Positions 35,266-35,521 of a stretch of DNA of 64,000 bases are shown piece by piece. Positions within the stretch are counted from its first letter, which is position 1, and each line of letters starts with the position of its first letter. The position numbers were made by a program, and so were the translations under genes. This DNA is from Octopus sinensis (taxonomy: Eukaryota), in the NCBI RefSeq assembly GCF_006345805.1, contig NC_043015.1, forward strand, positions 52,514,001 through 52,578,000, written 5' to 3'. The notes under the pieces are model-generated. The model did no database searches, was not told the DNA's origin, and saw nothing but the letters and a program-made list of their open reading frames with translations.

Positions 35266-35334
35266 CAGAGTAACGAGATCGTCTGCAGGCTCACGAGGTC
35301 GCTTCTTGCCCGTCAAGACCTCAACCACTTGCGG
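35266..35334 (-). CDS. mbl: Muscleblind 69-nt cassette exon carrying KKRP NLS half (positional homolog of MBNL1 54-nt exon 5)
   Basis: Acceptor catactaattag|CCG, donor CTG|gtacta; 69 nt, phase 0/0, no stop; PQVVEVLTGKKRPREPADDLVTL. Lies between the ZF3/4 exon and the next exon, like human TQSAVKSLKRPLEATFDL. Not in the ORF track. Confidence 0.87.
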
Positions 35335-35336
35335 CT

Positions 35337-35521
35337 AATTAGTATGCAGAGCACATGATGGCGTTTGGCCAATGAAATGGCAGCATGGCAGGGATGGCAG
35401 CACATGACAACAGCAAGCAGCAAGGCATGATGGGTGATGAAAATAAAAGAAAAGCACCATTGGTAAAAACGTTTCAACCAACATGCATTAAAAAAAAAAA
35501 CCATTATTTTATACCAGAAAG
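35337..35521 (-). promoter_or_regulatory. Splicing-regulatory 3' intron end: AG-exclusion zone with MBNL YGCY cluster
   Basis: No AG on the minus strand between 35337 and 35521. 12 YGCY motifs in 35350-35456, UGCAUG at 35487-35482, a U-rich tract ~110-125 nt upstream of the AG, and no polypyrimidine tract next to the AG. Confidence 0.8.

Follow-up and report, generated by a model that had tools for sequence, protein, structure and literature searches.

A likely ortholog of vertebrate MBNL exon 5, with a proposed YGCY-rich intronic silencer, in the muscleblind gene of Octopus sinensis

The muscleblind locus and its exon order

The window analyzed here, a 64,000-nucleotide (nt) stretch of Octopus sinensis DNA (assembly GCF_006345805.1, contig NC_043015.1, forward-strand positions 52,514,001 to 52,578,000; coordinates below are counted from its first letter), contains part of a muscleblind (MBNL) gene on its minus strand, in which a 69-nt cassette exon is preceded by an intron end that is free of AG and crowded with YGCY motifs. 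We propose, with a probability of about 0.8, that the cassette and its putative intronic splicing silencer are the octopus ortholog of the vertebrate MBNL exon 5 unit and work as a switch by which MBNL regulates its own nuclear localization signal (NLS). The gene is identified by its sequence as muscleblind/MBNL. A six-frame scan for the CCCH motif located the muscleblind zinc fingers (ZnF) 3 and 4 in a single minus-strand exon at 55425-55667, with the finger spacings C-x7-C-x6-C-x3-H and C-x7-C-x4-C-x3-H that define the tandem CCCH fingers of MBNL. A phmmer search of 1.8 billion protein representatives with this exon as the query returned MBNL proteins, 114 of them with E values of 1e-30 or lower. 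In addition, three exons of the window, namely, the ZnF3/4 exon and those at 28362-28502 and 12344-12469 (the last exon), match the O. sinensis "muscleblind-like protein 1" isoforms with 100% identity, and the Pfam family PF22628 is recorded for these isoforms. The O. sinensis MBNL gene is about 180 kb long, so that no more than its 3' half lies in the window. On the minus strand, an intron of 20 kb separates the ZnF3/4 exon from the 69-nt exon, and one of 6.8 kb separates the 69-nt exon from the exon at 28362-28502, which reads GGITGAPYAKRVAVADSKSG...YQQALAMQLQQ and is a clear homolog of vertebrate exon 6 (GIPQAVLPPLPKRPALEKTNG...YQQALANMQLQQ). The three exons are as follows.

55425-55667, minus strand: MBNL ZnF3/4 exon, constitutive, 5' of the cassette, 243 nt, ending in AVPTRAL, with the donor CTG/gtagggt (CCCH scan, phmmer, and tblastn)
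35266-35334, minus strand: cassette exon, proposed ortholog of vertebrate MBNL exon 5, 69 nt, phase 0-0, encoding PQVVEVLTGKKRPREPADDLVTL, with the first basic cluster KKRP
28362-28502, minus strand: next constitutive exon, GGITGAPYAKRVAVADSKSGVPVYQPGNVAYQQALAMQLQQPYLPVT, with the second basic cluster (KR), boundaries placed to about 1 nt (tblastn and splice context)

The cassette exon and its splice sites

The acceptor of the cassette exon reads ...gcatactaattag/CCGCAA, with the splice-site AG at 35335-35336, and pyrimidines make up 60% of positions -23 to -4, whereas the other five MBNL exons in the window have 70 to 90%. The donor, CTG/gtactatat, has five of nine matches to the consensus CAG/GTAAGT, whereas GTAAGT is present in the next three downstream exons (read by eye). 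In the O. bimaculoides model XP_014777742.1 (P0012), KKRP is followed by 19 residues and then by the KR of the next exon, GGITGAPYAKRVAV (28362-28502), and the equivalent arrangement in human and pig is KRP, 18 residues, and KRP (P0197). The original prediction, which was made from the letters of this DNA, had described a 69-nt in-frame exon with KKRP, a weak donor, no proximal polypyrimidine tract, and a distance of about 19 residues between KKRP and the KR of the next exon; all four descriptions are confirmed here, the third of them in the form of a tract that is poor in pyrimidines.

The proposed intron control region

The features around the cassette were compared among six loci, with cassette lengths in brackets: octopus (69 nt), Solemya velum (L001, 69 nt), Limulus (L002, 66 nt), the amphioxus Branchiostoma lanceolatum (L004, 57 nt), Albula mbnl2 (L003, 54 nt), and Clupea mbnl1 (L005, 54 nt). 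Vertebrates are thus represented in the nucleotide comparisons by two teleost paralogs. The octopus features, from the upstream side to the downstream side of the cassette, are the following, and negative and positive positions are counted from the exon.

35337-35521, minus strand: AG-free zone of exactly 185 nt, running to the 3' splice-site AG; the nearest upstream AG is at 35522-35523
35487-35491, minus strand: the earlier branch point candidate UUAAU, A at 35488 (-154), a valid yUnAy
35482-35486, minus strand: upstream GCAUG of Rbfox type, beside the branch point region, with a second copy at 35531-35535
35463-35467, minus strand: preferred branch point candidate UUUAC, likewise a yUnAy, whose A at 35464 (-130) precedes the distal pyrimidine tract by 8 nt
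35432-35456, minus strand: distal polypyrimidine tract ugcuuuucuuuuauuuucaucaccc, 21 of 25 pyrimidines, -122 to -98, the best tract of the octopus intron and not next to the acceptor
35353-35459, minus strand: 12 clustered YGCY motifs in the stretch from the distal pyrimidine tract to the 3' splice site, proposed to be bound by MBNL and to act as a splicing silencer
35257-35265, minus strand: weak 5' splice site gtactatat, with GTAYT in all six taxa
35239-35243, minus strand: downstream GCAUG, 23 nt past the donor and embedded in the conserved sequence uuugcaugu(a/u)gcu

The 12 YGCY motifs are located at -122, -93, -88, -85, -81, -68, -65, -56, -51, -48, -29, and -19, that is, within 107 nt, and three further YGCY motifs lie past the donor at +16, +28, and +38. 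On the minus strand, the mean number of YGCY motifs per 107 nt is 0.91 and the maximum is 12, which only 4 of the approximately 64,000 sliding windows reach, each at this same site. The window contains 11 AG-free stretches of at least 185 nt, most of them within TA/CA microsatellites, and the length of the AG-free zone alone is therefore weak evidence; the zone of the cassette consists of nonrepetitive sequence and abuts the splice site.

An AG-free zone of about 185 nt and 12 YGCY motifs in 107 nt were both part of the original prediction, and both hold at 35337-35521 and 35353-35459, respectively, the latter as the densest cluster of the 64-kb window. The same prediction had placed a distant branch point near 35490, and this holds in part: the UUAAU with its A at 35488 exists, but it is less well conserved than the UUUAC with its A at 35464. 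UUUAC recurs at -128 in Solemya and at -142 in amphioxus, and Limulus has CUGAU at -128. At the UUAAU site, Solemya reads AUUAAA, which lies at the very edge of the Solemya AG-free zone. Because UUUAC is better conserved across taxa and UUAAU is altered in Solemya, the A at 35464 is preferred, and conservation makes it the most likely branch point. An equivalent of the pyrimidine tract is found at -117 to -146 in all six taxa.

The second-densest YGCY cluster of the window, with 9 motifs in 107 nt (55358-55464, minus strand), is located directly downstream of the ZnF3/4 donor, at the opposite end of the same 20-kb intron, and overlaps a 164-nt AG-free stretch (55235-55398). It was ruled out as part of the same conserved system, and since it is unconserved in Solemya, Limulus, amphioxus, and the teleosts, it looks like an addition of the octopus lineage.

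Homology of the exon across animals

The position of the cassette is that of vertebrate exon 5, between the ZnF3/4 exon and the KR(P)..YQQA exon, and its peptide aligns with that of vertebrate exon 5, TQSAVKSLKRPLEATFDL (P0197), through mollusc, nemertean, chelicerate, amphioxus, and hemichordate intermediates. From octopus to vertebrates the peptides grade smoothly, with PQVVEVLTGKKRPREPADDLVTL in octopus, PHVVETLISKKRPRDPADDLIL in Limulus, TPDKVQSLKRLRDPSDDLL in amphioxus, and TQSAVKSLKRPLEATFDL in vertebrates. The homologous peptides are as follows.

Solemya: PQVVEVLAGKKRPRDPADAELVL
Mytilus: PQVVEVIQGKKRPRDPTDDLVLQ
Gigantopelta and Haliotis: PQVVEVLTAGKKRPRDPTDDLVL
Lineus (nemertean): PQVVEVLKGKKRPLDSAEELIL
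Limulus: PHVVETLISKKRPRDPADDLIL
Centruroides (scorpion): PHVVETLVGKKRPRDHADDLIL
Uloborus (spider): PHVVETLIGKKRPRDPADDLIL
Branchiostoma: TPDKVQSLKRLRDPSDDLL
Ptychodera: TTPDKSNKKRARDPADEIIL
Vertebrate MBNL1: TQSAVKSLKRPLEATFDL
Protein P0051: PQVVEVVPQSKKRLRDSAEELVL

In the hemichordate Ptychodera (P0171), the cassette and its first basic cluster, KKRARDPADEIIL, are kept, and KKG takes the place of the second KR; protein P0030 likewise has KKRAREPADDIIL followed by KKG. This pattern refines the published statement that Ambulacraria miss the double-KR arrangement. In amphioxus, a 24-nt micro-exon encoding SPLGTLDM (L004, 10172-10195) precedes the cassette in some isoforms.

Homology of the flanking intron across phyla

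The intron that precedes the cassette can be aligned without the exon. A blastn search with 160 nt of octopus intron as the query against loci of 53 to 89 kb matched Solemya with 88% identity over 160 nt (E = 2e-43), Limulus with 71% identity (E = 2e-17), and Albula mbnl2 with 65% identity over 104 nt (E = 8e-6), and each of these matches is the best in its own locus and ends at the orthologous exon. In nhmmer searches, a profile built from the three chordate introns only had a single match in the 64-kb window, at 35336-35435 (E = 1e-10), and a profile built from the three protostome introns matched amphioxus (E = 2e-9) and both teleost paralogs (E of about 1e-4), while reversed-sequence controls for both profiles gave zero matches at E values up to 100. 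The exact 14-mer GCCATCATGTGCTC occurs once in the window, at 35349-35362, where 0.03 occurrences are expected by chance, and it also occurs once per locus in amphioxus, Albula, and Clupea, always 15 to 35 nt upstream of the exon. These matches indicate that the YGCY-rich, AG-free intron end is very probably homologous by sequence to the vertebrate one, beyond a likeness in kind. The original prediction of a muscleblind NLS exon preserved in a cephalopod is therefore well supported by gene identity and exon position as well as by the homology of both peptide and intron.

The whole block that is conserved with the bivalve Solemya extends beyond the intron end.

35223-35492, minus strand: whole conserved block, consisting of the exon, about 158 nt upstream, and about 43 nt downstream, with 87% identity over 270 nt to Solemya velum

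When the whole window was searched with blastn against the Solemya locus, only two matches were obtained, one with the ZnF3/4 exon (55418-55699, 81% identity) and the other with this block (87%). Only 69 of the 270 nt of the block are exon, and three quarters are intron. The block is thus better conserved than the coding exons, since the ZnF3/4 exon reaches 81% and the exon 6 homolog was undetected at the nucleotide level. Codons identical to those of Solemya number 12 of 14 in the cassette exon versus 43 of 64 in the ZnF3/4 exon, which is suggestive of synonymous-site constraint in the cassette, although the sites are too few for a conclusion. In the ZnF3/4 exon, 67% of the identical degenerate residues also have identical codons, a hint that the coding exons, too, are under constraint at the RNA level.

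The motif content of the intron is shared as well. In all six taxa, the densest 107-nt YGCY window of the whole locus adjoins the exon, with 12 motifs in octopus, 12 in Solemya, 7 in Limulus, 9 in amphioxus, 9 in Albula, and 10 in Clupea, and the AG-free zones measure 185, 154, 129, 162, 145, and 178 nt, respectively. The octopus YGCY motifs are kept at aligned positions in Solemya (12 of 12), Limulus (7), amphioxus (6), Albula (5), and Clupea (6), and those at -68 and -19 are invariant across the compared taxa. GCAUG is present in all six taxa both upstream, at -149 to -191, and downstream, at +17 to +29. In amphioxus (L004, 11089-11180), the ancestral acceptor uaauuag has changed to uaauuac and splicing has shifted 8 nt downstream to gccucag, with the upstream block otherwise intact.

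More tentatively, and at slightly less than an even chance, we suggest that the approximately 100 to 160 nt of upstream intron and the approximately 40 nt of downstream intron form one homologous RNA regulatory element that has been alignable since the protostome-deuterostome ancestor and that has not yet been reported. Cross-phylum homology of this intron was not found in the literature searched, which included recent MBNL reviews and did not extend to subscription literature. MBNL is also absent from the 25 bilaterian-conserved DNA segments reported by Frith (2023; main text and supplement), with octopus among the genomes compared (PMC10735318).

Proposed mechanism and evidence on exon use

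In the proposed mechanism, low levels of nuclear MBNL would leave the spliceosome free to use a distal branch point, most likely the A at 35464 (about 130 nt upstream), together with the pyrimidine tract next to it. The AG-free stretch would then be scanned until the first AG is met, at 35335-35336, so that the 69-nt exon is included. Inclusion would place KKRP 19 residues ahead of the KR of the next exon and complete a bipartite NLS. When nuclear MBNL rises, its zinc fingers would occupy the 12 YGCY motifs and the three YGCY motifs past the weak donor, and this occupancy would block exon recognition and lead to skipping. The skipped isoform would be less strictly nuclear, which would close a negative feedback loop on nuclear MBNL activity. 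GCAUG on both sides of the exon probably lets Rbfox tune the switch by tissue, and the conservation of these flanking motifs suggests that Rbfox input to the switch is ancestral. For octopus, we infer MBNL binding, exon repression, NLS activity, and Rbfox input from the sequence. A human exon 5 minigene is repressed by the MBL homologs of animals as distant as Ciona, fly, worm, and Trichoplax (PMC5041496), and the protein side of the loop is therefore broadly conserved.

The evidence on inclusion and skipping is at the annotation level. The cassette is included, with an identical peptide, in the O. bimaculoides RefSeq model XP_014777742.1 (P0012), and forms with and without the homologous exon are annotated within one species in Mizuhopecten yessoensis (X5 versus X7) and Haliotis asinina (X2 versus X6).

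Several observations weigh against an MBNL-regulated NLS switch in octopus. All ten O. sinensis RefSeq isoforms, X1 to X10, skip the cassette, as is evident from AVPTRAL joining GGITG directly, and the sole octopus model with the cassette, that of O. bimaculoides, is partial and was predicted by Gnomon. When short cephalopod fragments derived from transcripts were sought across the junction of the ZnF3/4 exon, the cassette, and the KR exon, one candidate turned up, and none scored. The spacing of a classical bipartite NLS is 10 to 12 residues, and the 19-residue linker between KKRP and KR exceeds it but is close to the human 18. Finally, MBNL may not be the only or the main reader of the block, because the block also holds motifs other than YGCY, namely, GCAUG, CAUCAUG, and CAUUGGCC.

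Alternative explanations

This last point leads to the rival explanation that survives best, although we consider it unlikely: the intron block may be read mainly by Rbfox through GCAUG, by PTB- or CELF-type proteins through its U/C-rich and UG-rich stretches, or through RNA structure, with MBNL autoregulation minor or absent in octopus. The conservation of both the upstream and the downstream GCAUG in all six taxa agrees with such a reading, as does the regulation of the counterpart exon in Caenorhabditis elegans by FOX-1 (PMC10773944), and the most invariant core of the block, CAUUGGCC..GCCAUCAUGUGCUC, is only partly YGCY. However, the YGCY density next to the exon is the extreme of every locus examined, individual YGCY motifs are conserved by position, and in mammals the region is a mapped MBNL1 response element (PMC7901844). 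The involvement of other factors is also compatible with the MBNL model; the two are not mutually exclusive, and Rbfox, other RNA-binding proteins, or an RNA structure may act as coregulators.

With regard to structure, GGCAUGAUG (35528-35536) can pair with CAUCAUGCC (35424-35432), which would loop out the branch point region, but no covariation stands behind this pairing. A conserved RNA structure was rejected as a candidate: the RNAalifold consensus of the six taxa is weak (-8.5 kcal/mol), with an unfavorable covariation term of +1.72, and its sole long-range helix pairs the two palindromic GCAUG regions, which are invariant and show no covariation. The octopus fold is no more stable than those of shuffled sequences (z = -0.79). 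In the minimum-energy fold of octopus, the candidate branch points and the pyrimidine tract lie in a loop closed by an 11-bp GGCAUGAUG/CAUCAUGCC stem, and both halves of the stem are present in Solemya. In chordates, CAUGAUG at about -95 instead faces CAUCAUG at about -30, and the GGCAUGAUG/CAUCAUGCC stem is unsupported beyond the molluscs.

It is highly improbable that the cassette is vestigial or essentially unused in octopus and that the motif cluster is a functionless inherited relic. The absence of the cassette from all ten annotated O. sinensis isoforms and of junction-spanning transcript fragments would fit a relic, but a relic would have decayed, whereas here the reading frame, both splice sites, and all 12 YGCY motifs are intact, the block is 87% identical to that of a bivalve over 270 nt compared with 81% for the ZnF3/4 coding exon, and the O. 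bimaculoides model includes the exon with an identical peptide.

Least probable of all is that the block is kept for a DNA-level function as an enhancer, as deeply conserved noncoding DNA of animals is usually interpreted (PMC10735318), or hosts an intronic noncoding RNA gene, with the splicing motifs incidental. Against this, the conserved stretch centers on the exon, from which it reaches about 158 nt to the upstream and about 43 nt to the downstream side, and what is conserved in it (splice sites, the absence of AG, YGCY, and GCAUG) consists of RNA signals that are specific to one strand. In addition, no Rfam family falls on the block, the whole window being without an Rfam match at the gathering threshold. 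CA/TA repeats flank the conserved block at 35020-35095 and 35580-35720, and the sub-threshold, microRNA-like Rfam matches there were rejected, as they lie on TA/CA microsatellites and off the conserved block.

Other features of the gene

Octopus ZnF3 (55640-55650, minus strand) reads QRCTCTRQ, compared with the QRG(T/N)C of other molluscs and most animals. The variant adds an extra cysteine beside the first zinc ligand and is present in both O. sinensis and O. bimaculoides. Two small minus-strand exons, at about 26553-26594 and about 17391-17426, encode the near-duplicate peptides YSSTKLNEIQPYFT and YSSTKLNEPYFT, and each is followed by a strong GTAAGT donor. The pair resembles a tandem exon duplication within the C-terminal part of octopus MBNL, and the near-duplicate peptides were not seen among the noncephalopod proteins examined. 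The intron also contains a TA-rich microsatellite tract of about 2 kb with a GC content of about 10% (42000-44000).

Comparison with known systems

Human MBNL1 exon 5 is 54 nt long and supplies part of an NLS, and its inclusion shifts the protein to the nucleus. MBNL1 represses the exon via a YGCY region of 90 nt, which is flanked by a branch point at -141 and by a weak acceptor (PMC7901844); the description of this exon in the original prediction as NLS supplying, MBNL repressed, and served by a distant branch point agrees with that account. The octopus cassette occupies the same slot, from the ZnF3/4 exon to the KRP exon, as human and mouse MBNL1 exon 5 with its MBNL response element in intron 4 (Gates et al. 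2011, as cited in PMC7901844). Both exons are short and in frame, have weak splice sites, and place KR(P) about 18 to 19 residues before a second KR, and both follow a distal branch point and pyrimidine tract about 130 to 140 nt upstream, predicted from conservation in the case of the octopus branch point, and an AG-free stretch filled with YGCY. The octopus and vertebrate MBNL1 introns are alignable through teleost mbnl1 and mbnl2. The octopus exon differs from the human one in length (69 versus 54 nt), acceptor (UAG versus AAG), and first basic cluster (KKRPRE versus LKRPLE), and octopus has 12 YGCY motifs compared with about 9 to 10, as counted in teleosts.

The MBL-1 protein of C. elegans represses the KR exon of its own gene, and its long isoform is located in the nucleus (PMC10773944). 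Exon 7 of mbl-1 is alternatively spliced and, like the octopus cassette with its annotation-level evidence of alternative use, carries the first KR of a two-exon NLS, which is a predicted one in octopus. The worm gene combines repression by MBL-1 with FOX-1 input through an upstream GCAUG (PMC10773944). The worm exon is 225 nt long (75 residues), whereas the octopus type shows cross-phylum conservation of the exon peptide PQVVE..KKRPRDP.DDL and of about 100 to 160 nt of intron. Verbeeren, Teixeira and Garcia (2023) reported the double-KR exon pair in nearly all bilaterian phyla, with the first exon alternatively spliced, and found exon conservation across bilaterians to be almost limited to the KR motifs, with intron conservation noted only within Caenorhabditis and within mammals (PMC10773944). 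Because that study reported the exon pair and its alternative splicing so widely, the self-regulated NLS switch is already known in principle. The octopus cassette mainly confirms the published claim that the loop is ancestral to bilaterians, and what it would add is a control sequence that is alignable from octopus to fish.

The comparison would also pinpoint nucleotides that have been unchanged for more than half a billion years, namely, two invariant YGCY motifs, the CAUUGGCC..GCCAUCAUGUGCUC core, and the flanking GCAUG, and thereby provide a mutagenesis map for the human element. Myotonic dystrophy results from MBNL loss of function, and the feedback loop of exon 5 has come into use both as a biomarker and as a therapeutic sensor. 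If the proposed homology is true, the octopus and human elements are predicted to be functionally interchangeable in minigenes, and the element would be among the oldest known noncoding cis-regulatory sequences and the first of these to act in splicing autoregulation.

The loop also differs in kind from the ultraconserved poison exons of SR and hnRNP genes, whose loops destroy the mRNA by nonsense-mediated decay, whereas the MBNL loop would keep the reading frame and alter the localization of the protein. The bilaterian-conserved segments described by Frith (2023; PMC10735318) and Clarke et al. (2012; PMC3410860) likewise consist of noncoding sequence that is alignable between protostomes and deuterostomes, and they form a very small class. 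Those segments are mostly enhancers and promoters of developmental transcription factor genes, whereas the octopus element is proposed to be an intronic splicing regulator acting at the RNA level, and it would be a splicing-level addition to the very short list of noncoding sequences conserved across the Bilateria.

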